Shown: positions 2,356-63,628 of the stretch, one piece after another
Layout of the letters: each line of letters opens with the position of its first letter
Numbering within the stretch: position 1 is the stretch's first letter
From: Laetmonice hystrix
Taxonomy: Eukaryota
NCBI GenBank assembly: GCA_965235115.1
Contig: OZ249441.1
Span: 10,912,001 to 10,976,000 of the forward strand
Direction: 5' to 3'
DNA: 64,000 nucleotides
Notes under the pieces: model-generated
What the model was told of the DNA's origin: nothing
Seen by the model: only the letters and a program-made list of their open reading frames with translations
The model's database searches: none
Position numbers and translations under genes: made by a program

Positions 2356-5300
2356 ATGGCGGTAGCTATGATGCAGCAGATGAACCCGCCGCTGACGGCG
2401 GCGGAGAGAGCAGCTCGCTCAGTGTTCGGTAGGTGATAACCTCCTCTAACTCCAGGGTATGCGCTGCATCCATAATAAAGGTTGAACTGTATGGTTTTCA
2501 GAGAGATTAAGGTCCAACAAAATACCGCACGTTGAGCGATAATATGTCGATTAAAAGGGAAGACCCAAATTTTGTGATGTTATTTAGGCCTATATTAGAT
2601 CTAGGCTAAAATAGGCAGCACTGCCTGCGTATGGATGGGGCATGTGACTGCAATACTGGATTCTTATTGGATAATGTCTGACGGCAGAATAGCAGATTAT
2701 CTAATTAGTGTCCCAATTAACAATTTTGTGTTAGTTAGGCTTAACCATGTTAACCTAATTAACCTAACCCAAATTCCCAAACATATTGTAACACAGTGGT
2801 TATTCTGCCCTCTGACGGCAGAATAACAATGGGAGACTCGAAATAAGGGAGTTCCCGTCTTTTCCGCCTCGGTCCCGTATGGCGACACATTAGTATGACG
2901 TTAGATAGGATGACAAAATGCTAATCTGTAGCTGGGTGCCGTGGTGCTATTTGTTATGAAATTTGATGGTGCGTTTAGGAGCTATTCAACATGGCGGAGC
3001 CTATTGAGTTTTTCATAACAAATAGTCTAAATGCATCCTGCCACAGATTAGCAATTCGTCGTCCTATATAACGTCATGCTAATGTGCAGTAGACAGGACT
3101 GGGGCGACAGTGCTGCCGCCACGCAGATATTACTGGAATGCACCGTTGCGCATGCGTCTCAAGTCTCCCATTAAATGGAATTTGTATGTTTATTAGTGAG
3201 GAACGACTGGTATCTTTGTAGAGCCTGTCAAATTGTGTGGTCGTTGCCAGGAAATTCTGTTTGGAAAATGAGAAAATCTGTTTGTTTCCACACAAACTTT
3301 TGAAAATTCAGTTTTTTTGGTGTGTTTTCATATGTTAATGTTGTAAAAGCCTGCTGTAACTTTACGGTCTATGCATACACAAAGCAGTGGTCCACATTTC
3401 ATTTAATGTTTTTATGTTCTTACAGTGGGAAATATTCCATATGAAGCAACTGAGGAACAGCTGAAAGATATCTTTGCTCAGGTTGGACCCGTTGTTAGCT
3501 TTAGGTAAGTCTAGCAGGAGTTCATGAAATAATCTGATGAAGGAGTGAAGGGTAATTCTTTGCAGTATTGATAGGATTATTGATAGGATTATTGATACGA
3601 TGTCTGTCAAACCTAACAAGGTGAATTGGTTTTAAGATCTTTGAATTCATGATTTAGAAGAAATAAGGTGTCAAAACAAAACAAAGGATATGATTTAAGG
3701 GCAGTTGCTTTTCTTTTGCTATTAACAAAAGGAATGCAAGAATGAACATGACAAATAAACATGTCTGAATGTATCACTTTAATTTTAGAGGCCTATCTTT
3801 AAGGAGGTGGTTTGTCTTTAATAGTAGCAATACTGAATACATGTATTCATTTAGAGATCCAGTCCTAAATACACAGTCTATATACCGTATTTCATTAGAA
3901 TGGAAAGAATGATCAACCTAATGTATAAGTCTTGTTAATGTATTCGTTATAGGTTGGTATATGACAGAGAAACTGGCAAACCCAAAGGGTATGGATTCTG
4001 CGAGTACCAGGATATTGAAACGGCACAGAGTGCCATGCGAAACTTGAACAATCATGACTTCAATGGCCGTCCTTTACGGGTGGGTGTTGCTGCAGGAGAA
4101 CAAAATAAGGAAGATATGAAAAGTAAGTAACCTGTCATCTGTAATCAGCAAAACCTGTCGTAAAGTGGCACTGCAGGAACCCTTTTGAATGTTTGTTTTT
4201 GAATCCTCATTGGCCTGTGTTTCGTTGAAAGCAAACTTGTGATATTTGTGTGAACCAACTTGTGAATATTGATGGTGGTGTTGTGTCTATCGATTGGGCT
4301 CAGACAGGGGATGGGAGTTTTAAGTCAGATAAGTCCTGCCTTCAAAGATTTGTACATCTATGGTTTTAGATGACAAAAGATGAGTTGTCAGGAATTGTAT
4401 GCCATTCACAGTACAAGCTATAGATGAAATAGTTTAACCGGAGAGGTACCTATATAGCATGAGAACTTCAACCAAACAGTTGCACCCCTAATTTTGGTAC
4501 TCATTTTAAACAATTCTTAAATTGGATTTATAAGCTGTGGCTTTAAAAGCAGGATTGACGGTACTCACCACAAAGATCCACAGGCTGCTATGTTCTCTAT
4601 TTCTGTTCAGTAGAAGGATGCTTGTACAGTATTTCATGACCTGATAATGTCCGTTGATTTTATTTCCTGTAGGTATGCAGCAAGCTGTTGGTGGAGCCCC
4701 AGTGGAGGTAATAATATTGCATTGAAATACTTGACAAAATCAGATCTCGTAAGTTGGAAGGAAGAGGCTAACAAAAATTTCGATCTTGTAAGCTGTATGC
4801 ATTTATACAGCCTAGTGCCCTTTTATGTATACACATGTATGTAGATTTAAAACACACAAATCAGATAAACAAATACGTGGTAAGTGTATGAGCGTGTCAA
4901 TATTTTATGTTTCAGAGCCCATATGGAGACTCTATAGAACCAGAGAAAGCACCTGAGGCAATCTCCCGGGCTGTGGCCAGCTTGCCACCCGAGCAGATGT
5001 TTGAATTGATGAAACAAATGAAGGTAACAAATGAAATACCTCTGGCTGTTGATTTCAGATGAGAAAACTGATGAGAGAACTTGATTTATTAGGGGAGTCA
5101 TCATTAGGCAACATCCAAGACATAGATGAGAATAATAGCCTGAGGACTAGATATAACCAGTATTGAAGTGAAATATAATTTAACTTATAATGTAAGAAAA
5201 AATATGGAACACAGAATTCTGTGAGCAAAGTTTAACAAAGGATTGAAAACCATGTGTAACGTGATTTTTTTTGTATTTCAGCTATGCATTCAGAACAACC

Positions 5301-8300
5301 CAAATGAGGCTCGCAACATGCTGCTGCAGAATCCCCAGTTGGCATATGCCCTCCTTCAGGCCCAGATTGTAATGAAGATCGTTGACCCCCAAGTGGCCAT
5401 GGTAAGAACTATACATCCTGCCATGTTGTACACAGAGAAAAAAAATGCTAGAAAGGCCAGCTTCATTGTACCCCTTCCTGGTGGACAATCACTTGTTTAA
5501 TGCCCCTTCCTTTGGAGATAAACGCCAGTATAGTTAGCCCCCCACCTGGACAGACACTAGCTTCATTGTTACCTCTTCCTGACAAACCCCAGTCTAAAGC
5601 TACCCCCATTCTGAGCCAGGACCAGCTGGGCCACCTGGACCTCGTCCACATCCACTGTTTTAGGTGGTCAGTGCCACTACTTTCCATCTTGCAGGCCATG
5701 TTACACAGACAGACAGAGCACATCCCACCACTCCTTCCATCCAACTCCAATGGTGGCAACCCTGAAGATATGGTGAGCCTTTAGTTACAAACCAAAATTT
5801 AATCAAACGTTACGGCAAAGTCAAAACAAAACCACAGTGATGGGTGACTGATGGCACACTACTGTTGCATATTAATGAATAATTCGGTGGTAGTCTTTTG
5901 GTAAAGTGAGTAATTTTGGCAGTGTAAAAAGTACTGATGTCATGCAGATCTTAATGAGGTTTTGGGTTTTTACATAGAAAGGAGATGGCAGTAATGCCCC
6001 ATCACTTGGGGGTCTCACCGCTACATCTATGGGCGTACCGGCATCAATGGCACCACCCTCACTCATGGCACAACCTACTTCAATGGCACCACCAGTGTCA
6101 ATGACAGGAGGCTCAGACTTTGGTAGGCTTACAGACTTGTAGTTATAATTTTGGGAGGCATCTGTTTGTTTCCAATTAATCTGCGAATGCTGTCGTTATT
6201 TAGTATATTTTATTGAGCAGTCAACCAAACATTTCCAAAGTTGTATGACAGTTTTGCTGGGATAACATGGTATACAAAAATGTTATGTGGAATCCAGGTC
6301 GAGGTCCGCCTAGCTTGATGTCGCAGGTAGGAAGACCCGGTGCTGGTCTTCTTGGAGACATGCCACAGATGTCCAACCGTGGTGGGCAGATGGGGCAAGG
6401 ACAGGGAGCACCGCGACTCATGGATAGAGGTAATGTCTTCTTTTCCCTTTTTTTAAGTAGGACATGTATGTAGATGAAACCACTGGTAAATGTAAAACTA
6501 TAAGTTACTAGTAAGCCATCAATGACTGAGCAATAAAAGTTAATTAATCAGGCTTGAATTCCTATATATTGGCAAAGTTATTTCATGAACTCATCTTTAG
6601 GAAAATGGATGTAGTTTTAAAGCTTTGATTTCATTACAAAACAGTGAAGACAGATTAGATTTAAGCTATCAGTTTACTGAATGACAAGCCTGAGAATAAT
6701 CTTATTGAATATTAATATGGGAAAGAAAATTTATCATTCTGTGTTTCAGGGGCTATGCAAGATATGGGTGGAATGCGTGGACCTCAGGACATGGGAGGCC
6801 CGCGTGACATGGGTGGGCCTCGCGACATGGGTGCACAGAGAGATATGGGAGGACCTCGAGACATGGGTGGACCTCGCGACATGGGTGGTCCTCGAGATAT
6901 GGGTGGTGCAAGGGACATGGGTAGTGGAAGAGACATGGGTGGTGCAAGGGACATGGGTGGCATGAGGGATGTTGGTGCTCAAAGGGACATGAGCCGAGGT
7001 GGCCTTGGGCCAGCTTCAGGCCAAAGAGCCGGCCTGGGGGGCCCACCAGAAATGTCGCAGCGAGGCCTCCCACCACGTGACATTAGAGACCCAAGGAACA
7101 TGTCTGGTGGAGACCCACGCAGCATGGGTGCAGCTGACCCCCGTGGAATGGGAAGCGCAGATGGGCGTGGCATGGTGGGCACAGATATGCGGGGAATGGG
7201 TGGCACAGATCCAAGGACAATGGGTGGGATGGACCCACGTGGAATGGGCGGCGTCAGCAATCCCAGACCTATGGGCTCCGGCATGGATCCTCGCGGACCA
7301 ACCCGTGGCCAGCCAGCTGGAGGGGGACCACCATCTGGACCTCCTCGTCAACAGGTGAGCCTTGGCTTTACTTTGTTTTGTCTGGCCGTATGGTCAAGGT
7401 CAATATATACTTTTGACTTTAAGGTTTCTGTCTAACCTTTAGATAAGGAAAATAACACCAATTTAGAATCTTGCATGGTTGAATTGTGCACCTAGAAAAA
7501 ATGAATTACTTGACTAATTCTGCTTAGTTATAAGGAAAGCAGAATGTGCATCATGCAACAGTTGTAAAAGTTTTACAATTCCTTTTCTGTAAAACTGGTC
7601 AGGGTACTGGCCAGCAGTGTTAACCAGGGTTTTCTGCAGGCCTGGTTTAGGGGGCAGACTCCCCCCACCCACCCCCTACCCAAAACAAAATCAGGTACTC
7701 TCCAAAAGATTTCTGGCTGTCTATTTCTGAAAGAAGCCTGCCCCTAGGCACTGTCCCAGGAGTTGTTGCCCACTGTCTCTTTCACTATGATCAGCCATGG
7801 TGTGGCGCATACCTTCGCATTTTCTTCAGCAATGAGCTGTCGCCCATAATCTATGCCTGCCACAGCAGCTCTGTGGCCCACAATTTACACATTCCATTTA
7901 TTGCAGCTACCAAACACACCCCCCAACTTGGCAATGCTAAGCAAGGTAAGCCCTTGTAGGCACAGTAGCAGTAGGGGGTGGACAATTTGAAAGCCTACAT
8001 GTATTCACTGTTGTGGTCTTCATCAGTACTTGCACTCACAGGAATGAGTGCTGAACTACACTCAGCTGGATACATTAGCATTCATGATGGGAAAACTCTG
8101 CATGTGAAATTTTTGTATGCTAAATTGTGAAAAATGAAGTAAGCCTTGAGGTCCACAGCTTATTGTGGAGAGAACCCTTTTTCTTTAGACTAAATACCTC
8201 ATATGTTGAGTTCTGTGCTATTCAGTAAAGTCTAGTTGGTACAGATATCGTACTCATTCATTTCTACAGCCTGTGGAAACAAATCATGTTTATTTATAAA

Positions 8301-13070: not shown

Positions 13071-14905
13071 TTATTGAGTCTTCTTTTCTTTAGAGGCTGC
13101 CTCCCTTGCTTGTTTCTCTGTGCGTGCCCTAACTTGAAGGTGGACGATGTACCTACAGGCCAGTAGGAGACCAAACACAAGGGCAGGCGTCATCTTGTCC
13201 ATACCATAATTCAGTGCATAATGTGTGTAGACAGACAGGCACATGATGAAGAACAGTAGGATGTTAGCAAGCTCCTTTAACGGTCCTGCAGAAGACATGA
13301 GAATTAATTATTTTATATACTATGCACTGATGTAATTTCTTTTTAAAACTTTTCATAATTTGATATACATGGTGATTCTAATTTTCTTTCAAACTTTCCA
13401 GTTATTCTTTAATAATTTGATACAGATGGTGATTCTTATTACTGACAGACTGCCTTCTGACAGACTGCCTTATTTCTTTTAACCAGATCTTCTGTAAATT
13501 ATTCTACTCGTTGTCATAAACTTAACACTATAATGTAATTTTCAGATGTTGCTAATGCTCTAGTAAAGGGTAAGCTTTGTTTGTTGTTATTTGACTGAGT
13601 ATTAAGGATAAGAAATATGTTATCGAGAGGTTTTATAAACAATAGATGACAAACCTGGAATGATGGCCATGAGAATGCCGCACACAACCTCTGAGGTCCC
13701 TATTACTTTTCTGTACATGTGAGCATTGGGTTTCCATCCTGTCTGTTCTGCAAAGGGGAAAACTTTGCTTTCCCTAATGAAAGTCTTTCTCTGTAATTAA
13801 AAAGAAGCAAAAAAAATAACAGCAATGACAAAGATTTGAGATAGTAAAGTAGATCTAGTTGGTGCTCCATTCCCCATGATTTGCAACTGACATAGTCAAA
13901 CCTTGTGTAGACTCCTGAATCAAATCACGCCCATAGACCCCATTCATAATGATGTCCGATAATTTCCTTTCTGATTGACCATTTCTGCCATATTTCTGTT
14001 CTCCCCCCCCCCAACACACACACACACTTACAAAATGCTGGATCCACACCCGTTTGTCTAATCGTGTATCAGTGATGTTGTGTTTTGATATGGAATATTA
14101 TGTTCATCCAAACTTGTCAACGCTTTTCCTGGGGCCGGTTTTACTAGTGAATGGGTTGTTAGGTCGAAAATAACGACCTAGCAACCATTCAATTTTATGT
14201 TAAATTAGCGACGTCCTTAAATAAGGACCTTTAGTAAAACCAGCCCCAGTAGCCTACATAGCACCTGTAAACTTGTCTGCTTTGAAGTGATTTAATGTTA
14301 TTCCAAAATTAGATCTAGGCCTAATTGTTATTCTTTTTTTTTTAAATCAAAGTCAAAGACTAGGCCTACACAATCAGAAGTCTTCTTTTTTTTTTGGGGG
14401 GGGGGGATATAGTATTTGTTTCACTTTATAATAATTTACATGATCAGTCTCAGGAAACTGCAAATCAAATTTTACAAATTACTCCTCAAAATTGCTCCAG
14501 GCCCCTCAGAACTTAATTCGAGCCTTGCCCTTGGTCTTGGACTGGTGTGGTCAGTGTGAAATTAGAGCCCAGGCTGCAGCCGTGTAGGCCCAGCCTCTGC
14601 CCAATCTAATTAAAATTAGATCTTGGTATTCCGCGTCTATAACTAAGACCTAATTTTAATTAGATTGAGCCTCTGCCCAGGCCAGGCCCAGGATAAGGCC
14701 AGCGGCCCAGTGCCGTGGCACCTCTGAAATTTTGTGGATAATTGTCTAACAGATAGTTCAACGGAGTTTCAAAATGTGCATGGGTAAAACTTACCATTTC
14801 CCTATAAACCTCTTCATTTATAGCGGGCGTAAGTTTTAATGTGCCGATAAGAATAAAGAAAAACCCTATTGTCATGGATAGAACGGTCAACACCACATTA
14901 GCCAT
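13071..14905 (-). CDS. TMEM35: TMEM35 family / NACHO nicotinic acetylcholine receptor chaperone, 153 aa, 3 exons
   Basis: Exons 14905-14795 (MANVVLTVLSMTIGFFFILIGTLKLTPAINEEVYREM), 13790-13655 (RKTFIRESKVFPF...YRKVIGTSEVVCGILMAIIPG) and 13285-13071 (PLKELANILLFFIMCLSVYTHY...ALVFGLLLACRYI...KEKKTQ*). GT-AG introns, 462 nt in frame. Matches TMEM35 motifs GTxKLTP, EVxCG and ALVFGxLLxCR. Confidence 0.93.
14129..14249. mobile_element. Fold-back MITE in TMEM35 intron 1
   Basis: Ends CTGGGGCCGGTTTTACTA / TAGTAAAACCAGCCCCAG (18 bp, 1 mismatch) plus an internal hairpin GAATGGGTTGTTAGGTCG...CGACCTAGCAACCATTC. Confidence 0.6.
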
Positions 14906-17905: not shown

Positions 17906-19168
17906 ACATAGCAAAATCTTGTCTTTATTCGCGTGAATATATTTTTAAAAAATTAATCGAGGCTATATGCATGAGATTCATATTGCCCAATCGTAAACTT
18001 ATGTGTATCTATAACTCGTTCTTACACGTTAATATTTCAACTACAAACTGACTGGTGACGTTGAATTGGTGCATTTTTCAAGTTCTAGATGTAGAGGTCA
18101 TTAAAATGACCCCATGTGTTAGTGTTTTGGTTTGAATATAAAATGAGTCTTCTCCAACCAATAGCAATGCTATGTTATTGAAGTATCATCGGCCCATGTA
18201 GAGCGCTGGTCGTAGAGAATGGTACGCATCGAGTAACAATCCTTCAGTCCAGTCCTTCCGCTTTCTGTAAGACCGATCAGACGGAGGACGAGCAGAACGT
18301 CCTGAGATTCCTTGGCCACCTTACCAGCTGCCCTTTGATGAGACGCCCTACTGAAAGGTGGACTCGAGAGCCTGATGGATAGATGTGGGAATTCCCGAGT
18401 CTGTGATTATCACTCTCAGACTGAGTGATCGCCACCTCGTGACCTTTCATTCAGAAAAATGTCAAAGTGATATTCTAACCCCGTCTCGCTTGTTCGTTAT
18501 GCGGCGGCAAATTGACACCAAGTGTAGGGCTATTGACACCAAGTGTAGGGCTCTAGAATATCTTTTTCCACTTGTGAGCTCGATATCCTCGTGTCGACCC
18601 TTAAGTCTCGTGATCCAAGAGAAAAGTATTCTCTATATATATACGGACACGTTCAGACAGAGACTGCTTTGTTCAAGATCTGCGGTAATTGTGTAGAATT
18701 ACATGTATTGCACAAGTAATTATTGTTCCAAATACACACGTACACCTATACCGGCCTATTGGGCAGATATTGTATGTATTTTATGGAACAGAAATTTGTT
18801 GGGTCAATATAATTTTACAAAGAAACTGCTAGGAAGTAGGCCCCTATAGGATCCATCCCTGTCGATTTAGGCTATTTGCACGATAGAAAACTCCACCACT
18901 ACACAGGCAGAATATTTCACATGGGATCTATTTCCCAAGGAAACTCGCTGATACCATTGGAACCACAACTATAATGTTACATATTAGTAGGCTACTTTAT
19001 TAATATTTTTCCGTTTCCCAACCAAGCCGATCGGTTAGCCGTAAGCACATCATGACAGGTGTTGGTCTATAGCCAACTTATTGGCAGGTGCAATGGATTA
19101 TCCGCGTCTCCGCATAATAATTTCAGGGGTTGTAGGCCTATACGGTAGTGTATTAGGCCTAGACTACA

Positions 19169-19805
19169 TTGCAGTCGCATACCCGGAAGTCCAGGTGGTT
19201 CGGTTCTCCTGGAATGAGGAAGTTTCCTGATGAGGTGATATTGTGTGCAGCGGGAAGCCAGCTGACAGCAGGAGAGCCCAACTGGGCTAGCTGCTGGCTT
19301 CTTAGCCACCGCACCCCGCCCCATCCCTTCCCCGCCCTCGTCATCCTCGAGGCTGATGTGGCGTGCATTCAGCATCCAAAACACAGCCACGCTGCTGATG
19401 TAGCTGTAGCAGCAGCAGCAGCCCACCTCCTGCCCGCCCGCTCGTGCTCCCGAACAGCTCCACGCCGTACGCAGGCCTTGCCACATCCCAAAGCCTGCCT
19501 GCCTGTCTGTCTGCCCAGCCTCCTCAATATGTTCTCAGCGGCTGGTGCGTGTGGCAGGGAGGATTGTTGTTATTGTTTTCTCCAAGGTCGACGACTGAGG
19601 GTTTGATCTGACGGACATCACGAGACGGTCTGTTTGGGTAGCAGGGAACATGTACTGTACACAGCCATGGGAAACACGACAGGAGTGAGGGTTCCGTCCC
19701 TGAGTGGTGACAGAACATCTCAGTGAGGACGTGGCTGTCACTGGGCCAGGGCTGGGTCAACCAGACGGGAGGACAACAGGAAACACTGCAGGCAGACCAC
19801 ATAAG
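19169..19805 (+). other. Candidate non-coding first exon of the 7TM gene
   Basis: GC-rich island ending in a strong donor AAG|GTAGGA at 19805/19806. The first coding exon has an acceptor (TTTCCCAG at 25098), so an upstream exon must exist. Joining here gives an in-frame upstream stop and two short uORFs. The link itself is unproven. Confidence 0.3.
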
Positions 19806-21736
19806 GTAGGAAGGCTTAATTAAAAAGTCATGTAGGCCGAGATTGTAATAATATTTTATTGGCCCTGGTTAGGCCGAAATCTGTGAATGATTGAACGTAT
19901 ATGAACAGTCAGAACGTCGGTGTTATATGATGGCCTACAATTTCACTATAGATTGCCGGAACGGCCGACGGCTTTTGTTTATGTGCGCCTACATATATGC
20001 CTACCTACAGCTGGCCTCCGTAGGCCCACACGTTTCCGTAGGCTATAGGGCCTAGAGGTAGGCCTACATCGTTCGAGTTAATTATGACCGGATTACGTGA
20101 CCATAAGATATAGGAGCCGATATTAATCAGGAGTATTACGAATGTTCCGTATCTTGATTAATTAAGATTACAAATTATAGAGTGGATGAATCTAGCAAAT
20201 CACGAATAGACTTGCATATATCAGGACGGCGCAGCATGACTATAACAGAACGAGTAGATTTAGCGAGTATATCAGTATCAGTCTGTTTATAAATTTGTAA
20301 AAGAAAATATCCCACATCTTCTTGTTTAGTTTACAAATACTGTTTGGTATCTCGATCATCGTCACTCTCGATTGTCGATCGTCACGTGGATGTGGGCATT
20401 ATGTTTGCTGCCATTGATGACTCACATGACAGAAAAAAGTTGTTTTTCTATAAGAGCAGTATGTCAGTATATTTATAGTCCTACTCCAAAAGAAACAGTA
20501 GCTCGATTAGTATGTACTGCATTTCCCAGTCACCACGGACCAGCTTCTGGGTCGAATAATTAAACAATGACAAATACACTTCTATAGATAACCCCCAGAG
20601 GCGGAAGAAGCATGGTCAGCGGTTAAAACTGGAAGAGAATGATTGGGACATGTATCTGAGATAACCATGTACAATGTATAACATTGCCAGATTATAAGGC
20701 CATGCAGGCATCAGGGCCCTGCTTCGACTGAGCTTGTCATTGTGATGTGTTAACTCCTGACGTCCTATAACGACAGGCAGCGAGGCGGAATAATGAACAG
20801 ATACCACCGCACATTGGTCCTGTGCCTTGCTCTACCTGTTATCGCAGCAATGTTCTGTTCCTTTCAATAAGCAGGAACCGGCGACATCTAAATTTATGCG
20901 GCATGCAAGGAGTTCGGTGCAATTCAGATTAATCACAATAATAAGTTTCTACTAGATTATTCAAGAACAAAGGGAACTTATCTCGTCATTCAATTAACAA
21001 TGAAAAATATAACTGCTATTGTTAGGAAGGCCCATGTCATGTTACATGAATAATGTACTTTCCACCAGTGTCGGATTGAAAAACAGGGATTTCGCCACTC
21101 AATGCCATATAATGTCTCCAGGTCTATTAATGGGGTCCTATAGAGCAGCTGGTCCATATGTGCGCATGGGTGCGGGTATAATATTATAAGTATGATACAT
21201 TGTATAGGCCTAATGTATGAATGATAATGGCGATAGCTAAGCTAAAATATTCCTTTCATTCAATTGAAATGATGCCTCCCAGAACTCTGGGGGAAACCCC
21301 GGAGACAATTCAATGTCTTCATTGCTGCGGGTATTAACTATGCAGATTTCTGGTACCCTTTGTTTTGTACGGTTACCGACTGGAAGGCACGAGCCGCGTC
21401 CTATTCCCACGAGCCTGTTCTCCTGAGGTGTTCCTGCCATTGTTTGACATTATTAAAGATAATTCCAGGAGACAAGACCGAGCGGCCCGGAGAGTGGGGT
21501 ACTACCCTCCAACAAGCCGCCCTTGGGGTGGTCGCCACGCGTCGCTACAAACCCGTGACCGATAAGGAAATCAATAAGAACAGAACCATGATGAAAACAT
21601 CAACTCTGCAGCACCAAGATAATCCTCGCTACATCCGGCAAGCAATTCGTGTGTTTATTATCTTTTGGAAATTCTTGCTAATCCTGGCTACCGAGAACTG
21701 GATCGGTCAGGACAGCACGGATTTCTGGGAATGACC

Positions 21737-37200: not shown

Positions 37201-37249
37201 CATCACGTTTCTTTGTATTAATGCCAGCGTCTTCGTAGGAAAGGGCTGA

Positions 37250-37975: not shown

Positions 37976-38092
37976 TAACCAGACGGAAAATTTCATATTG
38001 AATTCATGTACTATCATCCAAAATGATACAAAAGTAAATCTCAGAGATGCAAATACAAATTTTATCTGAATCTTACACCAAATAGTATTGGA

Positions 38093-41607: not shown

Positions 41608-41647
41608 CTCCTAGGGGGCAGCACTAATTAACTGCGCCCCCTGGTGG
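41608..41647. promoter_or_regulatory. Convergent pair of CTCF-like motifs
   Basis: CTCCTAGGGGGCAGC (+) and CCACCAGGGGGCGCA (-); motif match only. Confidence 0.4.
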
Positions 41648-44126: not shown

Positions 44127-45393
44127 TGCACTAAAGCCAAAAGTCGGGGCCCCGAACAGTGGGGTTGAGCGAATGCGATACGTTTCTCATGCACCGTACT
44201 CATTGGCTGATACCGTAAATTATAACGACATATCTGATTGTTATAATTGTTGTATTTCAAGATTTAGATTGTGTGTAGACCTGCTCACACGGTGAGACGA
44301 TGGTGACGTTAGACGAAGGCCCACGCCCCGATACTCGGTGGTCAGTCAATAAGTCTGTAGGCCTACCAAGCCGCCTATTGACTCCGGGATATAATTGACA
44401 TGTGGAGGGCGCGATCACCTGTAGATGGCGCTGACGTACACGTGTGGCGTAGGTTACATGATGATCACAGTTTGTTCATGAAGACACATGGTGGAGACTG
44501 TATGATGACATGTTCGGGACACGGTACACACGCGCTCAGATACAAACTGTGAGTGTATTAACGCTACACGTGACGCTCGTGTCAAACTGTGATTCCTACC
44601 ATATTGAAGGGGCACGAGATCGACATCACACTTCTTCGGGCGATTCAAATCCATCTCACAGTATTTTCACAAGAGGTTATTTAGACTTATCAATCCCCCA
44701 TTCACTGTGCTGAATATCTGAGCTTGACATATAGACACCGTACCCATAATCTGAAGCCTGAGATCTGCATCTGAAAATTAAATGCATTCAACTTCTCTGA
44801 CTGAATTTGGAATGAATTGCCGTACTAGAAGAAATGAGTAGGTTAGTCTATAAATGTCATTTCACCTTGACCTGAGTCGACTTGTCCTCTGAAATAATAT
44901 TTTACGTAAGGGCCCGTTGTGTTTCAGAGTGTGTGCATATCTGGTGAACTCCAGTTCAATTAACCCATAAATATGCCAGATCGAATCGTCTACGAGAGGG
45001 CATTGGAGCGGGGTGGATATCGAGAGGGGTGGGAAGGGTAGCGAAATTGACAGCTATGTGTAAGTAGATTTTTACTTACGTCAACCTCGGTAGTTCCAGG
45101 CTAACACCTAATCAAAGTGTCATGGGTCCAGCCCACTCACAAGCTGCGAACAGAATGACACAATATAAAACATCCCTAGGAAGATTCACTCACGTCTTCC
45201 ATTGTTCCTATTGTCTCCTTACGTATACTATAGACCCCCCGTTTACTTGTCTCCGCGGGGGGTCGAGGGGGCTGAGCCGAGGACCAGTGGGTGGGTGCCA
45301 CGCCCCGCGCTGTGAACATCGAGTTTTACGTTAGGTAACGTTGTCGCCTCATCACCACCACTCGTCATGTCACGTATTGTCTGCGACGGCTTG

Positions 45394-45516: not shown

Positions 45517-47999
45517 TGACCATTCCGACTCAGTATGATTGACTTGCACGAAGACAGTTCGTAAACCAAGCCAGCGTCCCGTAGTGACGTTACGTGTTGA
45601 GATGTAACGTAAAGTGGAGCTGACGAGTTCAGTGGTGACACTTGAAGAAATTATTGCCCCTCACTTTAACTGCGGCCCCTCGCTGGTCGGGAGTTCTGAC
45701 ATCGTCACAATGACAACTCTCGACGGTTTCTCACCCCCGGCCCACGGCAGGGTTTAGATCTACACGTAGCGTTATTGGCGTGATTAATCGGATAAGGATC
45801 ACATTATAGCAAACACAAGGGCTCAAAGACATAACGTTTGCAAACACCGTGTCATATATAGAAGCCAGGTGACCATCTTGATTTGAGGTACTTTACTTTT
45901 ATAGTTACACGCCCAGAGGCCCGCAGGTATCCTATACCTGATGTCCGACGAACCTCAAACACCCTCATTTAATTTATGTCAGTTATTCTGCAATTTGGCA
46001 GAGAAACGTTTCTGTCGGATTGGAAATATTTGACAGGAAAATCAACATATCATTTCGTGCCACCAGATTAATATGGGACTATGCATATGGTCTACACTAA
46101 TCTGGTGGCACGGATACGCTAGTATAAGCTCTTAGTATTCATGAACATGTTTAGTTGTATATTTTCTATATTTGTTTATTGAGAAATACATCATCACATC
46201 GCCAGGTTGATGCCTTCTGATTAGGCCTAATTATCGTCATCCGGGCCATTAGACTGCCGTCAGACTAGGCTAGTGTATACCGTCATACCAAAGTCTCAAA
46301 ATGACATCAATATACATTTGTATCAATATAAGTAGAAAAATAGTATTATATAGACATGAAACGCATTCTCATAAGAAAGGTAATCATATATAGGGTAGTT
46401 ATATATGAGATGCCCCCTATAGATGATATCCTTGACTGGCACAGGTGTTGATTTTGAGGCTAACGTCTCCGCCTCCTGCGACAATGTTCATGTCGGTCAG
46501 GCCTATCACACCAAACGAGGTCTGTTTGATATATTTGGTAATAATATTCCCCCTCAGTGAAATAGATATACAGTCGGTATTAACAATGATGACATATCAT
46601 GGAAAGTTGACATGTATCTGACCAGTTATCATGTTTTAATTAGCGTTAAAATGTTCCCACAATGACCACCAACTGCCCCCGTCATGAGGGTAATAATTGA
46701 AGCCCCACTGCCGACTTCCATAAAAGGTCGTCAAACACCTATCCTTGCCCTGTAACGCCACGTGTCAAGTTCTTGCCGCGAGGAACACAATTGACACGTT
46801 GACAATCATGGTGCTGTTCTCTCCCAACAATTAGCCCCACCCCGTCAGACCTACATGGCACTCTCTCCCAAACTATCTTTATGTCAGTCCCTCCCCCTCG
46901 AGTCCACGTCCCGGTGAACCTGAACTTAACCAATATTAATCTTGGTTTCCAAGACGGAAATTGTATTGGAAACATGTCCAGGACACGGGGTGAAGTACCC
47001 AGGTCCGGTCGAGTCGGGATCAGCCGAGGCAAAGGTCACTTCAACAATTCCGCAGATTCAATTAGAAAAAACATTGCCAGAGGCGAAGTACATATTTCAT
47101 GGCTTATTGAAATTTTAAGGGCTCGCCTGTCAATTTCAGGGTTCAGTGTGTCTTTAAGGTTGACCCCCCGGGAGAGACGTTAGGGACCTCGGGGGCGGGG
47201 CTTCGGTCACTGGACCGTGTGAATCTTGACCATGAGTGAGGAACGTTTCTCTGAGTGCCAGCGAGAGGTGGTCGGATTCGGTTACTTATGTCTGTGATTA
47301 TATTGTCTGGGTAGAGTCATAGACCTGAACATTCGTTATCAAACCGTTAAATTGTCCACCCAATAACTATAACATCCGACAACAGGACCCATTACACCCG
47401 TAGACATCATGCTATTTCATGAAGATAATCATTTTATATACTGTAAACCCATCATCTTATACAGAAGGAAAACACTCAACATGCATGTAACGGACTTAAG
47501 CATATACCGTGTCACTATATATACATATAAGCGGCTATACGTTGATGTAACCCGTGAACAAGGGGGGGATATCAATATAATGTCAGGTTCCCTCCAAATC
47601 ATGAGTTCCTGACCCGATATGGACATCTCCCTATATACTACTTGCTTCCCCTCACCCATCCCTTCAACCTTTCATAGCTCCTCATACCCTGAGGACTATG
47701 CATTCAGACCCAGGCATCATTATATGATGACCATGCGCTAGTATATATTTGCGTGCCACGCCCAGGCCTTGCGACAGGTGTCCGGTGTATAGGTGTTCTG
47801 GGGCAGTGACACGTTGGGGGTCGGGGCAGTGACACGGCGGGCCTGCGGTCATCACAACACTGGCCGACCGGGGACAAGGGGATAGGACCCGGCGGCTGGT
47901 GACAGCAAGGGCACGGTCTGTGCTGGACTGGGAGGGTGGGACTTATACGATTGACCAGCAATGACCGCCGACCTCTTCAACTCTTCACCTCATGAGAAC

Positions 48000-48183
48000 N
48001 NNNNNNNNNNNNNNNNNNNNNNNNNNNNNNNNNNNNNNNNNNNNNNNNNNNNNNNNNNNNNNNNNNNNNNNNNNNNNNNNNNNNNNNNNNNNNNNNNNNN
48101 NNNNNNNNNNNNNNNNNNNNNNNNNNNNNNNNNNNNNNNNNNNNNNNNNNNNNNNNNNNNNNNNNNNNNNNNNNNNNNNNNNN
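48000..48183. other. Assembly gap (184 N)
   Basis: Run of N bases, abutting a GA microsatellite. Confidence 1.
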
Positions 48184-48563: not shown

Positions 48564-48739
48564 GCCAATAATAATATCGTCCTGTCTCATCCCTGAGGTC
48601 ATGACATCAGTGGTCAGTTGACCTGGCGCGCCATGTCAGCGGCTCCGTGGTCCCGTCAGGTCAGTTTCACATATCGAAAAGAGTGGGGGTTCGCCCCGGT
48701 GCGCGGGGTTCTTCCTATTCTCACAGGATTGCACAGACT

Positions 48740-48818
48740 GAGTTAGTTACCTTGTTCTCGCCCTGATATAGCTGACATATACTGCTGACTGGGCGTTAAA
48801 CTAGTCACTCGCTCACTC
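48740..48818 (+). mobile_element. SINE 3' tail remnant
   Basis: GATATAGCTGACATATACTGCTGACTGGGCGTTAAAC followed by a (CACT)n-like tail; similar in layout to the SINE tail at 35500-35558. Confidence 0.45.
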
Positions 48819-49066
48819 TTTGGCTCCGGTTAAAAATGGAAAAATACATGATGCCCTAAAATAATGTCTCTACTTGCTAATAAGTTTTGGAGAAACATCA
48901 GTGAAAACAATGAGGGACAAAAAAATTGGCCTTTTGTAAGGTATGTCGAAGGTTGTGTTTTCCTCTGATCATGTATGAGAACCGATTGGTTGACTGATAG
49001 GCCTACGTCAAGTACACCGAGACTAGACCATCCCCGCTCTGTCACCTCGCTGAGACCCGATCCCGG

Positions 49067-49892: not shown

Positions 49893-50908
49893 AGGCGTTT
49901 TCCGGGTGTCAAATAGTCTTCAAGGTCACGCCCTCATCATAAATTAAGACGGGCGCGATCTAAGCCGGTATTCAAAGCTCTTCACTTTTCACTGAAGGAC
50001 CCGTTTCTTTTATAGTTATACACGGGTAGCTACCATATGCATATTATAATATTGTCATCATTCTATGCACTGCCTCGCCGCAGTTATCAATATAAGCACC
50101 AAAGAACCAGAACACCCATCTGGATGTGCTCTTGTAGCTATAGGCAGACGAATAAAGGACCAGCTCTCTTGTTAAGACGGCTGTATTAAGTCAGATATCC
50201 GGGAGGGGTCCGTACCGTGGTAGGGTGTCTGAGAGAGGGAGCTGGTTGAAAAGTTCATGCTACCTCCGACACGCCCTCCTCATTGCCATCAGATAAAAGG
50301 GCTGAGCCACCCACCATGTAGAGCCACTCTACATCATATTCGACAGCATCATGTCGCCTGTGTGATGACGTGGGTGTCGGGTTGGACAGTGCCGGAGCGG
50401 GATGCGTATTCACAAAGACATTTGTGGCACACAAAGCCACATGTAATGGATAGGCCTAATGAGTCGACCTCACCATGGTGGGGTCGAACCGACCGGCGAA
50501 CGAGGAATTCGATGGGCGTGGAAAGCGGCGCCATCTCAAGTCTTCAGATGAAGTAGGCTAGGACTTTAGACTCAGGCTAACAGACAATAGGGGCCAGAGG
50601 AGATATCTGGGTAAAGATGTCGGAGGTAGGGAACGGTAGATGTCAATTAAAGAGCGATGGCAGAAATACATGCATAATGTCTGCAGTATAGGTCTATACT
50701 GCAAAATGCAACAAGGATGAATTTCAGACAATGACAGAAATCGCATTTTTCCATGTTCACTAAAGATCAAGTCAGCCATATAATAAATCAAAAATGTTTG
50801 TTGTTGTTGTACTGTAATTACGATGTACAGAATAATTTAAAAAAAAAAGAATTGACCATGAACACAAACCATGTTTTATTTGAGAACGACACACGTCACA
50901 TTTCGAGG

Positions 50909-50928
50909 CAGCATGTTCTGACTTGTCC
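50909..50928. promoter_or_regulatory. p53-family response element-like site
   Basis: CAGCATGTTC TGACTTGTCC: 18/20 match to RRRCWWGYYY x2, zero spacer. Confidence 0.3.
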
Positions 50929-53928
50929 CACAGATTCAGCTCCGACATCATTGCGGTTTTCCTTTGTGGTCTCAAACACTGTCTGACTCACTATACCATG
51001 GATATATAGGCGGACAAAGAGACTACAAAATGGGATCCACGCTCACACTATATATAGCATTCTTGTGGCTTGGCGCGTCTCATGACAAGCCCCAACACGC
51101 TCGTGGATCGGATATGTTTTTGACAATGATGGGTATATTTGTGACACGGTGACATATATAGAGTTTGTGCCTATACGTATAACGGCTTACGTCGTGATCG
51201 ACTCGTATCGTGGGTGTGTTACCTGATGATGATGGGGGCAAGGGCATGGAATGTTGTTAGTGTGGGTTCACGGAAGTGATATAACTCAAAGTACACTTAG
51301 GTCAACCTTCGGTAGACACAGCCGTCGGCTGATAGTCACTGGTGCGTGGGGTGGAGTGCATGGGGAGGCAAGGAGACAATTTGACAATCTAACTGACTAG
51401 TGAGTGAAAGCCTGGTGGCACAAGATTATCACCTGTACGCACAGGATGGGAAGGGGTTACCCCGGGCCGTTATTCTTCCCCCTGTCCGTGCCAGGAAATC
51501 CCAAGACGTTTTCAGACATATCGTTTCATTGCACTGCAAAATGACAAACCAAGTGTGTAATTTGGTGGAATACTAATAATAAAAATGTATGTTGCGATAA
51601 GGCCCTATAATTATAAAAGACCCAAAAAGCTAAACGTTCCTAAAATATGTGCCTGACTGGATAAAGGATGTAGGCCTATGGGTGTAGGCCTGTAGCTGAC
51701 TTGTTTATTAGCGTTTATACATAATTCATAATCAGTCTCCATTCCTTCTCTCCGGGTTCCTCCCAAATATAGGCCTATACATTCCCCAAACTGCAGACGT
51801 AAATGGTGTTGTCGGGTACACCCACTTAATTCATTCGGCGAGACACGCCCTTACATTCCTCTCGCCTGAGCTGTTGGTCACCCACTGTCCCTGTATACGT
51901 GACATCTGTCTGTAGTAGACGATGGTTGTATCATTTTGATCTATTGATATTGTTATCATTGATACATGTTCGAGGCTCACCCGAGATTTTCAAATTACAC
52001 GGTATATTGTCCCCATTACGTGTATTGGGGGGTTAAAACGTTCGTGACGATAACTATTTAGTTGTGCTCAAGATGGGGTTATAGGCCTACTGTTCTTCTT
52101 CGGACATGGAATACAAATACCTTACACATGTAGGCCTATGTGAGGATCTATCCATAACAACACACTCCGTAATCAATAATTACCTCGCCTAGTCCCCCAC
52201 GGAAGGATAAACTACGTTTGTGTTGAGTAAATGCGGGAATAAAGTCTCTGGGAGCAAAGGATAATCGATATGAAAATAACCATGCAGTCCCATATATTTA
52301 TGCTCCATGCTGTTGTGCTATATATTTCTCTATACATAGGCCTAGAGCTATATATAGATGTACAACATTGTAATGAAGGACGTTTTTCGACATGACGTAT
52401 AGATTAGGCTTACGTGAAACATCCAGGGCCATTTCCGGTTCCGTTCCGATGAACGCGACTTGCTCACGACGTCTGAGTCCTGATCATCACGACAAGTTGC
52501 TGTTTGCGAGTTGCGTTCGGTCGTTGAGTAGACAAGTGGCCCGTTTACAATGTTTCCGTTTCCCGGTTGCTCGTAGCTGATTGGACGGAAATCTACACTT
52601 GGACTAGCCTGGTCCCCTGCCTACCAGACGCATCCGCTTTAAAACCTTGTGTTCGCATGATCGGCTGTGTTTCTCGCTGTTGATAATGCAAGATACAGTG
52701 TTAGGATTTTAGATCAATAATACTGAGTAAGACGTACTCGGAATAATCGAATTGTCTATATAGAACAAGCTCATTAGGGATTCAACATGGCAGTATGCTA
52801 ATACAACACCACCTTGCGATGAACGAATGCCAGGCAGAAACTTGCCCAGACTCTCGCGAAGCAAGTGAGTCTGGTGACAGAGACTGATATATGTCTGTGC
52901 CTATATATCCCGACATGCATGATTTAAATGCTCACGCATGAATTAGCGGCCCCACGAAAACTATAAGCTTGCGATAGGAAGAGTTCGGTCTATTCTTGGA
53001 CTAGGCCTAATCTTTATTATTCAACTCTCGCCCATAGTTTAAACATTGAGAGTCTATATGGTTTGAAGGCCATTTAAACCACCTACACGCGACAGGTTGC
53101 CTGAAGCGAGTAACTTTTCCCAGCCTTTTGTTTTTTTTTATCATTCTCCTTCGAGCTGTAACCTGTGTGCCGTTGGGCGATGGTCGACCCTGAGGGTGTT
53201 GACCAGTATATCCGGTTATCTCCGGTTTAGGGTGACCAGTAAAACCTTATTGATGGAATCACTGAGAAACCACTGGAATGTTGTGAGAGTCACACTATCA
53301 ATTCTTTGTTTGTTTGTTCCTTGATCTTTGTACATATATAATGAATGGACTGTTCTTATCGTCATGAATTCCCACGACTACCTTAACTTCCTCAGCCAGC
53401 TGCATATCTCAGAAAACAGGCTTCTGTTTCCTTCCAATTGGCATGACTTAATCGGCGGCCACTAATGGCTTTCTCAGGGATGTATGATATAAAGTGGGTA
53501 TCTGTTGGAGGGATATATTATAAGACATATAAATACAGTGTCACTGAGACATGTGTCATCACAGAGAATACTTCAAATATTGGAAACTTAAACAAAACAT
53601 CGTCTTCCCGGACCTCGATGAACCTCCCCTATTGACGAAGGATTGGGAAATATAACGTATTTCACACGTTTTTAAGACGTGTTTTGTGCGTTTAAACATG
53701 TCACCTGTATCTGAAACTATACCAAACAAAGGATTACTTAAAGTGTCCATTGGTCTCAGTCCGAATTAGACCAGCTGATCCCGTTTGATAAACAGATTAG
53801 TGCCGTATTGGAGTGAGATAAAGGTAATAGCTTGGAGTTTACAGCACCTTCCCAGGAACAGCTGAGTGTAAGAATCTGGTGTATAGAAGATCGATAATTA
53901 ACGTTAGACATTAATGACTGTTGTTGTA

Positions 53929-53996
53929 TTGGCTAACGTCACTAAAGAATTGGCTAACGTCACTAAAGAATTGGCTAACGTCACTAAAGAATTGGC
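53929..53996. repeat. 21-bp tandem repeat x3
   Basis: TTGGCTAACGTCACTAAAGAA. Confidence 0.95.
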
Positions 53997-55985
53997 GTAC
54001 ACTTTATAGAGTCACAGTATTAAAATAAACAGAGTCGTTGAACCCTCTAAATTGTTCTTCTAATTATAGGAGCCGATCAGAGTGCGTGGGTGGGGGTTAA
54101 TAACTGGCCCTATCTCACTCACAATGTACTAGTGACCCCAGGTGATGGTGGCACAATATATATTAATGTCTAATATAGGAATTATATCCATGGTTGTGTT
54201 TCTGTAGCGATGTAGAAAATGGGGCATCTCGCTTATATCTGCCGACATGCAACGTATATTTCTTGAAAAACCATGAATATCCAAGTCGATTCTCATGGCC
54301 CCTTCGTACACCTTGTACTATATAGAAATACCTGTGAAACAATGGCCCGACATACATTTCAATAACAAGGCTGATACTGGGAAAGTCGATTATCTTGAAT
54401 TAACTCGGGGTTGATTCTGTACGTGGTCTCGCTATTAGTCATGCTCACCGTGGACCATGCCCTTTGTGACTGGTCACTCTTCATACCGTCCAAGGTGCAC
54501 CACCCTTTCCCATTTTTCAACATACCATAATAAAAGGTCACAATTAAAGATAGTGAACTGTCCGATTGAAGGTCATCACCTGCAGTATAGGTACTTCACC
54601 TGTAGGCCTATTTATAGGAATGAAGTGTTGGCAAAGAACGTATGAATTCAGTTATGGTGTTTGTGAAATTAATTAACATTATCATTTATAAAATAAGAAT
54701 ACTGTATCTGTTACTGTATCTCATATACTCATGGTAGATCTATGTCTTTTCCCCAACAGGTCTTCCATAGTAACGTGGTTTTACTGTTACAACCTCGCTG
54801 AAATATTTATGACAGCTGGGAAATTCCGTGAACGTAGGCTTATATAACATATCAGGAAGCTTATATCGCATCCTTTTTACACCCCCCCCCCCCCCCAGCG
54901 AACTCGAACCTAAGAACACATTTAGTAATCACAAAATATGAGAGAGTAGGAATAGTATACAATGGATTACGAGCATTAAGTGATGACGTCACTGACCAAG
55001 TGGGTCGTTGTCCTGGATGTGTTCTGGCCTGTTGGTGATGGTAGTCGTTGAGACAGAGCGGTACTAAGGTCAGAGGCGGCATGAGGACAGACTAGTTATG
55101 ACCACCACTGAGAGAGGAGACACGTGCCAGAGTGTGACCTACGGCGTCAGGGAGTAGATCAAACGGTTAACGGGACGACGGTCACGTACGCCGACGGTAT
55201 ACTGCTAGATACATTGACTGCCACTCGAGACACTTGGTGTCAGTAGAGTAGAATAAAATATAGAGCAAGATATGGAGAGAAACATCAGGATATTTACCCG
55301 TAGCTCAACAAAGTCTTAATAAATTATTTCATCAGATAAAAAAACCTAATCTGATTCGCGAATCTTAAGGCTAGAATTCGTGATTTTATCATTGAATTGC
55401 AGGTTGGTGGAAACGGGTGGAATCGCTGCAAGATTGCATTTCATCGTGTCATTAGCGACTTACAAATTACTCTACCTCCATGTTGTTATGGCAACCTGTG
55501 ATTTATAGTGAACTGGTATAACTGTGCTGCAGTCATATTATATAACACTGAATCAGCCCTGTAAATAGTGTATAGATACGAGGCCGAGCTCGTCAGACAG
55601 GAGAACATGTTTGCCGCGGTATATTACACTTCTCGGCGCGATGTTGGCCCAGCATGTCGACACATGTAGGGAGGGCTATGTTATATTTGTAATAGACATG
55701 TTTATGATTGAACATTTTACATGTCCATAGAGATACTGGCTGTTTCAATTATGTTGTCATCTTGCTTGTTCTTTACTCATTTAACTAATAGTCCTGCTCT
55801 ATACTATAGAGGCAGATATATGGGATCGGCCAATATAGGTTAATTAATGTAGTACACAAATTATAACACATGCATATCTACATTTCTGTGTACTATAGGC
55901 TATAAGAGAAGGAGGCAGGCCTACATGTAAGCGCAACCTGTGGGGTAACCTGAATTGGACATTTATTTAGGAAAGGTTGCCCCTA

Positions 55986-61350: not shown

Positions 61351-61743
61351 TGTGTCTAATTATTCAATGGACGACCAAGCTTGAAAATTCTCCTAAAATA
61401 TGTATTTTTCAATTAAGATGTAATAAAAGAAATGTTATTTCGAAGTGGTCATTATATTCCCAAAGAATATAGGCTAAACAGGCGTTATGCCATTATAGAA
61501 GCTAGGTCTATCGGTGCAGATGAAGGCCTGATGTCACTAATAGTATGTTATTGTAATGTTCTGCGCTAACCATGTTAAGTGACATCAAGGGTGGGTGGTG
61601 CCACCCCGCTCTGCCGCTGTCTACAACCGGTGACATCACCAACCAACCAATGTATGTCGGCTGGCTGGCTGGCTGGCCGGCCGGCCGGCTGGCTATAGCT
61701 GGCCGACAGGACAGACGGATGGCTCACCGGCTGGCCCACTGGC

Positions 61744-61763
61744 TGGCATGTCGTGGCATGTCC
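61744..61763. promoter_or_regulatory. p53-family response element-like site 2.15 kb upstream of the CKI ATG
   Basis: TGGCATGTCG TGGCATGTCC: both cores CATG, zero spacer, 17/20 consensus match. Confidence 0.35.
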
Positions 61764-63628
61764 TCATGCCACTGAATGGTTCCCAGTATTATTGTTTCTC
61801 ACTGACCGCCCACTGAGGGGCCGGGGAGGGGGTGGAGCCGAGAGAGGTTGCCGTCTATGGTTGTGTGAGACTCGGCGATCACGGCTGCTGCACCGTGTGG
61901 GAGGGTGTGGTGGGCAGTTGTCATTTTTTGCTCTACTTATGGTGCAATGATATATAATTATGATGGAATTATAGTCCGTATATTACGGTGGCAGGCCGAC
62001 CGACCAGCATATAGTGCTATCACTGGGGGATGGTGACAGGCTGCCGTTATAATCCGTATCCATTTCTTGGCAACCTGTCACCAGATAATTAGGATTATTA
62101 ACGTTTGGATTATAGCCCTGGCTATCACAGCTTGGTTGTTTTGAGTAGCCAAATTTAATTGCTTGAATCCTATCATATACTTATCCGACACAAACTCAAC
62201 AAAACTACTAAAATATGTCTGCCGGCTTCATCCTCGAAACTATAGTGTGTGTGAAAGTGTGTGAAACCTATTAAATCCCTAACAACTTTATCCTTTAGTT
62301 TCTACTGCTCGTATAGGACCTGCTTAATTGCTTTATTTGACTTATGATTTTATAATTTATACCTTTCTTTTTTTGATCTTGAAAAAGTACTCTCAAACGT
62401 TGCAGAAGCAGAATTAGACATATGTATCAGGTGCGAAATAATACAGCCGTAAATAACTACAGTAATAGTCACATAACTGTTAATATATGTCTCTTAATAT
62501 AGACCTATATTATGACATAATATACCAGTATATGCCTACAATGTGTAGAGTCTATCGGAAAGGGGGGGGGGGGGGGTCACATCTCCATGGTCGCCACCAG
62601 TAAATTTTTTTTAGACACACAAATCATAAAATATATCGGTTGTGTGAACAGCGTTGATAGACGTAGGCTATATAGGCTACAATTAGAAAAAAACCCGTCC
62701 TTGCCCTATACTTCTCTAGGTACACAGGAGGGAGCGTGCCGTATCTGGGCTCAGGTCGCTTGTCTTAGTGATCTATCGATTCATGGTTCATGTAGGCCTC
62801 GCCGACCGAGGACCTACGTCAGCTCGTGCAGGTGGTCGGTCGGCCGACCACCGGGACTGACCGTGGGAGTCTCGGGGCGCGTTCAAGGCCACAGTGACGG
62901 TCGTGTATCCCAGTCGGCACGTGGGGACGGGACGGGCCGGGCCAGACTCCCGGGTCAACACAACGACAGGCACCGACACGTTTGGTAGTCCCGTGATGGA
63001 ATGTCACCGTCGCTTCACCAGGCCGATAGGATCATGGCGTCACCTGTATTAAACAATTTACATGTATGATATGATGCATGCCATAGGCCTATCTGATATC
63101 AGTGGGGGTTTTAAGGAGGGCGGGGGTGGGGGGTGTTATACGAAGTATTTTTTTTGCTAAATGTTTAGGCTAACATTACCTTGACCACCCAAAAGTTTAG
63201 GCTAACATTATAGGCCTACCTTGACCACCCAAAAGTTTAGGCTAACATTATACCTAGGCTATTATAACATTGTGTCTCTAAGTTCGTCTCTAAACGGTCC
63301 AAATGTCTGGATATATTTCATATTGAGGTCCTCATTGAGTCTAAATGCCTATACTGCTATTGTTAATTGATTACTAAGTTGGGCTTGCCAATGCCCACTG
63401 ATGAAGGCCTAGGCCTATGTAGGCCTCTATATCAGAGGCTTCCCATAAATGCGTTACCTAAGCCTAGGCCCCCCTCTGTCATAGCCGTGGCTGAATGATA
63501 AAGTCGGGGCTGATGCACTCAGTCACATGAATCAACTCGCTAGGGTTTGAGCGGGGGAACTCCGTACAACAGGCGGTTGTGTTGTGGTGGGACGCCAACC
63601 ATGTGTCTCAACAGGTGCGCGCGGGCGA

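Follow-up and report, generated by a model that had tools for sequence, protein, structure and literature searches.

The palindrome TAGGCCTA occurs 29 times in a 64,000-nucleotide stretch of the Laetmonice hystrix genome (NCBI GenBank assembly GCA_965235115.1, contig OZ249441.1, forward-strand positions 10,912,001 to 10,976,000; hereafter the window), and it is strongly overrepresented throughout the 627-Mb assembly, in which the window lies on contig 6. The word arises in one step, by a 6-bp gain that turns TA into TA-GGCC-TA; five independent comparisons document this change. We think it probable that the sites are excision footprints (“scars”) of one or more cut-and-paste elements that target TA and carry GG...CC ends.

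A first-pass annotation, made from the letters of the window, had listed 29 coordinates for TAGGCCTA. All of them are exact matches, and the window holds no further copies. The annotation also put the expected number at about 0.8 and the enrichment at about 30-fold, for a GC content of roughly 40%. The GC content is in fact 43.7%, but both other figures proved sound: dinucleotide-preserving shuffles of the window contained a mean of 0.71 copies (maximum 4), and Markov models of orders 0–3 predicted 0.8–1.3, giving an overall expectation of 0.7–1.3 and an enrichment of 23- to 41-fold. The excess vanishes only at Markov orders 5–6, whose model already includes the motif. TAGGCCTA is the commonest palindromic 8-mer of the window. 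In ~196 kb of pooled sequence, only poly-C and CGCGCGCG have a higher observed/expected ratio, which puts it third overall and first among words other than simple repeats.

Is this excess a peculiarity of the window? Genome-wide, we counted 168,757 copies of TAGGCCTA and 3,469 of the reversed word, ATCCGGAT. Because this control includes CpG, for which the observed/expected ratio was 0.68 in the sample, words of the form WWGGCCWW were counted as a second control. They total 398,543 sites, and TAGGCCTA accounts for 42% of these instead of the ~6% expected of one word in sixteen; the remaining fifteen words average ~15,300 each. The genome-wide enrichment amounts to ~11-fold relative to the same-core words and 33- to 49-fold relative to the reversed word. 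Further, 29 scattered loci that had been fished with an unrelated short interspersed element (SINE) contained 29 sites in 91.7 kb, so that satellites do not account for the count; some tandem arrays of the genome do contain the word. The 40 bases on each side of TAGGCCTA are different at every site in the window, which means that the word is not a repeat family. When the TA density of the window is extrapolated, the ~169,000 intact copies represent ~0.5% of all TA sites. The observation of an excess is thus confirmed as real and genome-wide.

The sites are also clustered. Five of the 28 inter-site gaps in the window are shorter than 60 bp, compared to 0.86 expected when an equal number of sites is put at random TAs (P about 0.001), and the variance/mean ratio of the counts across loci is 3. 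Different TA-NNNN-TA classes adjoin at 2585/2596, 14310/14316 and 63059/63084, and abutting double copies of TAGGCCTA are present at window position 37615 and at L011:554 (loci from elsewhere in the genome are designated by L and a number). An assembly gap occupies 48000–48183; the nearest sites, 46222 and 48998, are at least 800 bp away from it, and none of our results needs continuity across it. Six of the window sites fall inside stop-free stretches of at least 100 codons. Two open reading frames of at least 130 amino acids at 19067–19606, which cover sites 19133 and 19154, were the stretches scanned against Pfam, and neither of them had a match.

The one-step origin of TAGGCCTA is apparent from a pair of tandem arrays in the window, from a set of paralogous transposon copies and from two sites (52082 and 52131) that are polymorphic in the sequenced sample. 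Both arrays had been offered as examples in the first-pass annotation, and both bear out its description. In the 31-bp minisatellite at 28695–29231, one unit of 17 reads AAT-TAGGCCTA-CAG (the word lies at 28843–28850), whereas the others have an empty TA; in twelve gapless alignments, other registers of the array fit the reconstructed empty TA site. In the short tandem repeat at 63159–63252, one unit of which holds the copy at 63211–63218, three units read ATTACC, ATTATAGGCCTACC and ATTATACC, and neighbours in their longer form read ACATTACC and ACATTATACC. Among the paralogs of a Tc1-related repeat, L040:1180 has GCA-TAGGCCTA-CTT, whereas L035 and L037 have GCA-TA-CTT; a variant, TA-GGGGCC-TA at L039:1139, corresponds to TA in L042. 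Most of the array units and paralogs lack TAGGCCTA, which is therefore the derived state. The empty sites are plain TAs with arbitrary neighbouring bases.

Polymorphism was assessed with contigs from three runs (X1, X2 and X3) of one sample, which were aligned to 50400–54700. Exactly six letters are absent at 52082–52089 and, on the same contigs, at 52131–52138 in contigs of X2 and X3, whereas X1 has the reference form; both sites are therefore presence/absence polymorphisms. Over these 4.3 kb the reference differs from the sample contigs at about 2% of bases, and heterozygosity is therefore very high. Two of the eight TAGGCCTA sites in this interval are polymorphic between such haplotypes, a proportion that fits continuing or recent activity, and the alleles seen at the polymorphic sites are empty and scar only. 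A scar of another type, TA-CATG-TA, is found on another haplotype at the TA of 52333–52334, 3 bp from the TAGGCCTA at 52337–52344. In all, three of the four listed 6-bp indel polymorphisms in the interval are TA-NNNN-TA scars, and scars therefore make a genuine contribution to small-indel variation here. Within the same interval, 38 bp of the reference (54630–54667) are replaced by AAC in the contigs of all three runs.

The inner four bases of TAGGCCTA are palindromic; that is, the inserted halves are matched. We scored the enrichment of all words of the form TA-xy-(reverse complement of zw)-TA. Among the palindromes, GG/GG exceeded background 24-fold, GA/GA (TAGATCTA) 8-fold and CA/CA (TACATGTA) 6.6-fold. 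No other palindrome did so except TATCGATA, which scored high as a possible fourth scar class and was rejected as such, being internal to the SINE used for sampling loci. In the same scoring, the mixed-end words GG/CA and GA/CA were at background; the GG/GA mix was elevated 5-fold, yet it is a single transition from both parent words. When the numbers of G and C were allowed to vary (TA-G(m)C(n)-TA, 257 kb), the 2+2 form was dominant with 69 sites. Forms with one base fewer showed an excess of ~27, and those with one or two extra G or C amounted to a handful. Genome-wide, there are 19,570 TAGGSCCTA and 5,072 TAGGWCCTA sites.

The bases around the scars are not random either. A purine stands directly before TA (position -1) in 75% of TAGGCCTA half-sites (background 53%) and a T at -2 in 44% (background 33%), and 58% of the sites have R..Y on both sides, against 27% in the background. 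The target preference of TAGGCCTA is T-R-TA-Y-A, and it is symmetric. The flank preferences of TAGATCTA and TACATGTA sites differ from that of TAGGCCTA and from each other. Because these preferences are specific to the class (GGCC, GATC or CATG), the scars look as though different enzymes, and not a single mutational process of a general kind, had made them. As for their fate, the one-mismatch transition neighbours of TAGGCCTA reach, per pair, roughly 0.1 to 0.3 of the count of the intact word, which fits steady production followed by unconstrained point mutation.

A precedent exists for one of these classes. In the work of Plasterk and van Luenen, TACATGTA is said to be the excision footprint of Tc1. 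The same assignment, written taCATGta, is given for C. elegans (PMC3520976). The Tc1 precedent invoked in the first-pass annotation holds in the present genome, where this known scar is both enriched and polymorphic. We counted 79,253 copies of TACATGTA and 28,579 of its reversed control. In addition to the polymorphic instance at 52333, one has arisen within a Tc1 copy by a gain of 6 bp (L033:2743 compared with L032). In a search of the genome for transposases, TA|CAGT termini were found in all Tc1 (PF13358) and pogo (PF03184) families whose ends could be recognised, and many of these families have intact reading frames. When the flanks of Tc1 and pogo copies were read by eye, 17 of 24 ends had R/Y beside TA, which resembles the preference seen at TAGGCCTA sites. 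TAGATCTA, with 37,955 copies against 9,864 of its control, constitutes a third TA-NNNN-TA palindrome class in unique contexts (window positions 13850, 16962, 38654, 42020, 45755, 54735 and others). Scans of the window and 85 loci for TA|GA...TC|TA inverted repeats showed no GA...TC-ended parent of this class.

How might TAGGCCTA be produced? In the scheme that we favour, insertion of the element would duplicate TA. On excision, the transposase would cut each 5' end two bases in and leave behind, on either flank, TA and a dinucleotide of the element; end joining would then yield TA-GG-CC-TA, with a net gain of 6 bp; the scars, presumably neutral, would accumulate and then decay by point mutation. 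Tc1 and Tc3 transposases cut two bases inside each 5' end. Sleeping Beauty and mariner footprints likewise occur at a TA target, consist of element ends and favour TA-rich palindromic targets. They retain three bases per end, TAC(A/T)GTA, whereas the dominant product here is 2+2 without a central mismatch, and the 7-mers TAGGCTA and TAGCCTA are a minor class. The closer likeness is to the Tc1/Tc3 footprints of C. elegans (TA-CA-TG-TA), in which a duplicated TA also surrounds two bases per inverted end, with a 6-bp gain and a palindromic outcome; the CATG version of this scar is found here beside CAGT-ended Tc1 and pogo. There are differences, however: the inner bases GG/CC were found in no Tc1, pogo or mariner copy examined, and TAGGCCTA is twofold more numerous than TACATGTA, whereas such scars are called rare in C. 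elegans (PMC3520976). We infer that a GG-ended parent exists or existed, that its cut is staggered by two bases, and that it is either Tc1/mariner-like or a TA-duplicating relative of Harbinger. The 2+2 product and the R-TA-Y preference favour the former; GG ends and the abundance of the superfamily in this genome favour the latter.

Several observations weigh against an origin by excision of a GG-ended element. Inverted-repeat scans of up to 342 kb (the window and 85 loci) returned no TA|GG...CC|TA element, only false positives, and neither these scans nor the transposase searches found a TA|GG...CC|TA parent in general R-TA-Y contexts. All Tc1 and pogo families with recognisable terminal repeats end in CAGT, not GG. 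The scars would outnumber any parent family at least hundredfold, and some on a single haplotype are spaced only 20–50 bp from each other, a shorter distance than transposons usually cover in local hopping. Homopolymer slippage, and not GGG ends, could account for the extra-G variants, and the one GGG-ended family that we found, described below, does not have the right context. The numerical disparity can be examined more closely. By our own estimate, if a scar is lost as soon as any of its eight bases mutates, a steady-state stock this large is maintained when about one event is fixed every hundred generations or so, which for a thousand elements is ~1e-5 per element per generation. For active cut-and-paste elements, rates of this order are nothing out of the ordinary. 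It would therefore take no more than a small, very mobile family, and an excess of scars over elements is no contradiction in itself.

Among the candidate elements that were set aside, the one at window 2906–3066 lies inside longer arms (2886–3086), and the one at L025:1858–2141 is internal to a CAGT-ended miniature inverted-repeat transposable element (MITE). Mariner transposases (PF01359) turned up in the genome search as rare, degenerate copies without clear terminal repeats. A more instructive candidate is a MITE at L069:384–3364 (arms 386–608 and 3196–3362), which is split by a 2.6-kb pogo and has the ends TA|GGGCGTTTAAGT ... ACTTAAACCCCC|TA. Its terminal 12-mer occurs 546 times genome-wide (control 113), for the most part in inverted pairs with a spacing of about 394 bp, and 466 of these termini are preceded by TA (control 5). 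In 459 of the 466, the base before TA is A; it is a pyrimidine in only 3. The corresponding A..T context is present at 5.6% of TAGGCCTA sites, below the 9.9% of the background. Thus, this 394-bp family with GGGSGTTTAAGT ends is not the main source of the scars, from which its nearly invariant A-TA...TA-T context is missing. It does show that GGG-ended, TA-flanked elements exist in this genome. The near-constant A implies either that the target is strictly A|TA|T or that the ends themselves contain TA and were inserted at A|T without duplication; this context recalls the target logic of ISL2EU (A|AT|T) and Spy (AAA|TTT).

The first-pass annotation had proposed excision footprints as well, and had labelled the responsible element ISL2EU/IS4EU-like. 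The footprint proposal gains from the 6-bp polymorphic insertions at TA, the palindromic ends and a target preference of the scars' own. The label fails, because a defining feature of ISL2EU, the duplication of AT within an A|AT|T target next to ends that begin with GG (PMC4482050), is not what we observe: empty sites are plain TA, and in 342 kb the ISL2EU scar words are not enriched (ATGGCCAT 5–6 times against about 4.7 expected, AATGGCCATT 0 times). A broader version of the idea traces the scars to Harbinger/ISL2EU (PHIS) elements, which abound in this genome, instead of a Tc1-like element. As a rule, PHIS elements start with GG (PMC4482050), so that the inner GG/CC of the scars matches the termini of ISL2EU but also those of most PHIS groups; strict, short, AT-only palindromic targets are another likeness (PMC4482050). 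The superfamily is very active here. We found 720 candidate DDE_Tnp_4 (PF13359) transposases, mostly intact (150 were scored, nearly all with open frames), in loci fetched at lengths too short to reach the element ends. At L055:705–1093 there is a Harbinger-type MITE of 389 bp, with GGCC...GGCC ends and a TTA duplication, that L056 lacks; it must be recent, as it occupies one of two 99%-identical copies. The GGG-ended, A|TA|T-flanked MITE family points in the same direction, as do the TA-duplicating Harbinger relatives, known only from rust fungi (PHISTA, PMC12730594). Against this stand the target sites. Harbinger duplicates TWA and ISL2EU duplicates AT in AATT, Spy makes no duplication, and other PHIS groups duplicate ANT, CWG or TNA (PMC4482050), whereas the scars sit at plain TA with an R..Y preference. 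The bases beside the TA are arbitrary in five empty sites and not limited to T/A, contrary to the TWA duplication of PIF/Harbinger. The Harbinger scar words TTAGGCCTTA and TAAGGCCTAA occur 0 times in the 342 kb, where the ISL2EU words are absent or at background, and the A..T context of the MITE is not overrepresented among TAGGCCTA sites. The GGCC-ended MITE of L055 was itself rejected as a source, as its TTA duplication is wrong and the matching scar words are absent. We therefore regard a PHIS origin as unlikely.

Could the scars have formed without any transposon? A nuclease might make a staggered break at TA, after which the same two bases, such as GG, would be added to both 3' ends by a telomerase-like or template-guided activity and joined into TA-GG-CC-TA. 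The empty-handed search for a parent in 342 kb, the great surplus of scars over any candidate parent, the G-run variants (GGG, GGGG) and the closely spaced pairs on one haplotype would all be accommodated. On the other hand, the halves are matched and GG/CA and GA/CA are at background, which makes independent additions unlikely unless the added bases are fixed; the three classes have three flank preferences; and the CATG class has known transposon parents in this genome. We know of no such process of transposon-free insertion at TA, and we consider it quite unlikely. An undescribed short-insertion process had been named as an alternative in the first-pass annotation; matched ends and class-specific target preferences weaken it, though no parent has been found. 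A still less credible reading is that TAGGCCTA was not made by insertion at all and is maintained by selection, either because a protein binds the palindrome or for some other reason, or that it is the 8-bp sequence which another transposon prefers as its target. The word is a perfect palindrome and is clustered, it forms abutting double copies (37615 and L011:554), and a CTCF-like 13-mer, TAGGGGGCAGCAC, illustrates that binding motifs can be strongly enriched in unique contexts in this genome. Yet five independent one-step 6-bp gains from TA, two sites with presence/absence polymorphism and one-mismatch neighbours at roughly the numbers expected for free decay all speak against selection, and we judge this reading very improbable. 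The outcomes that, according to the first-pass annotation, would refute its footprint proposal did not materialise: the sites are indel-polymorphic, they arose in one step in five cases, and the enrichment survives proper backgrounds.

Excision of a TA-targeting, GG...CC-ended element remains our preferred account. We also entertain, as a possibility that we doubt more than we believe, that the source is something new. It might be an undescribed TA-specific GG...CC lineage that excises far more than it accumulates and is therefore nearly invisible, either a Tc1/mariner relative without the near-universal CAG terminus or an animal counterpart of the TA-duplicating Harbinger relatives; or it might be a transposon-free micro-insertion at TA. 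Literature searches for TAGGCCTA together with transposon terms returned nothing relevant.

The remaining window sites are all exact matches, listed without strand. The copy at 2585–2592 has a TAGATCTA 3 bp downstream (2596); that at 14316–14323 shares its first TA with the TAGATCTA at 14310–14317 and lies 45 bp from the copy at 14361–14368; and 63084–63091 has a TACATGTA 17 bp upstream (63059). Copies at 19133–19140 and 19154–19161 are 21 bp apart, and those at 33951–33958 and 33991–33998 are 40 bp apart. The two abutting copies at 37615–37630, TAGGCCTATAGGCCTA, are as expected for a TATA target hit twice. Decayed or variant copies (TAGGCCCA, TAGGCTA and TAGGGCCTA) are found close to 20059–20066; a decayed copy, TAGGCCTG, is 7 bp downstream of 51671–51678, and another, TAGGCCTC, is 3 bp downstream of 63410–63417. 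The site at 48998–49005 is the closest to the assembly gap (815 bp). The others are at 21205–21212, 26900–26907, 29401–29408, 38766–38773, 44358–44365, 46222–46229, 50451–50458, 51770–51777, 53002–53009 and 54603–54610.

Other features of the window and the sampled loci deserve mention. Between 34820 and 38593 is a 3.8-kb TA-flanked element with long interrupted terminal inverted repeats and GTCC...GGAC ends; it has no reading frame of at least 130 amino acids, and a 0.7-kb foldback nested in it (37249–37976) holds the double TAGGCCTA. The sequence at 48668–48828 is a tRNA-related SINE of about 150–170 bp, for which the genome has over 1,600 candidate copies, and it includes TATCGATA. Relative to L058, L057 carries a 450-bp insertion (2344–2793) that is rich in G/C runs, contains its own TAGGCCTA at 2649, and has CAGTG...CACTG ends and a 5-bp duplication (AGAAG); judged by ends and duplication, it would be Transib-like. 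Some of the Harbinger-type transposase genes form long tandem arrays, whose periods are about 13 kb, 7 kb and 6 kb; the loci of these genes include L049–L060, contig 12 at ~27.56–27.93 Mb and contig 1 at ~26.03–26.08 Mb. Runs of at least eight G (or C) are about 35-fold over expectation across the window, which has 50 GGGGGGGG words; examples are at window 14400 and 28350, L014:2747 and L048:2192. The 13-mer TAGGGGGCAGCAC occurs 442 times genome-wide, compared with 5 for its reversed control, in unrelated flanks, and several copies have CCA in front, matching the CTCF consensus CCASYAGRKGGCRSY. It looks like a candidate CTCF-type binding motif, which points to a bilaterian animal as the source of the DNA. 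The full 13-mer is at window 41612–41624 and at position 1501 of L073–L086, and the shorter TAGGGGGCAG is at window 7648–7657; the latter had been considered as a possible transposon terminus and was dropped as part of this CTCF-like motif in unique contexts.

These results bear on how short, abundant palindromes are interpreted. Motif-discovery tools will report TAGGCCTA as a candidate binding site, and the abundant TACATGTA of Phytophthora has been read in just this way (PMC3520976). Each scar adds a TAG stop on both strands; scars should therefore stay out of coding sequence. They are usable as population markers for which the direction of change is known. If the excision account is correct, several hundred thousand visits of a transposon that is itself rare or gone are recorded in one short word, and past cut-and-paste activity can be measured where copy counts miss it. 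And should the more doubtful proposal of an undescribed lineage turn out to be right, that lineage would be responsible for a sizeable share of small indel polymorphism in this genome and would have marked about 0.5% of its TA sites.

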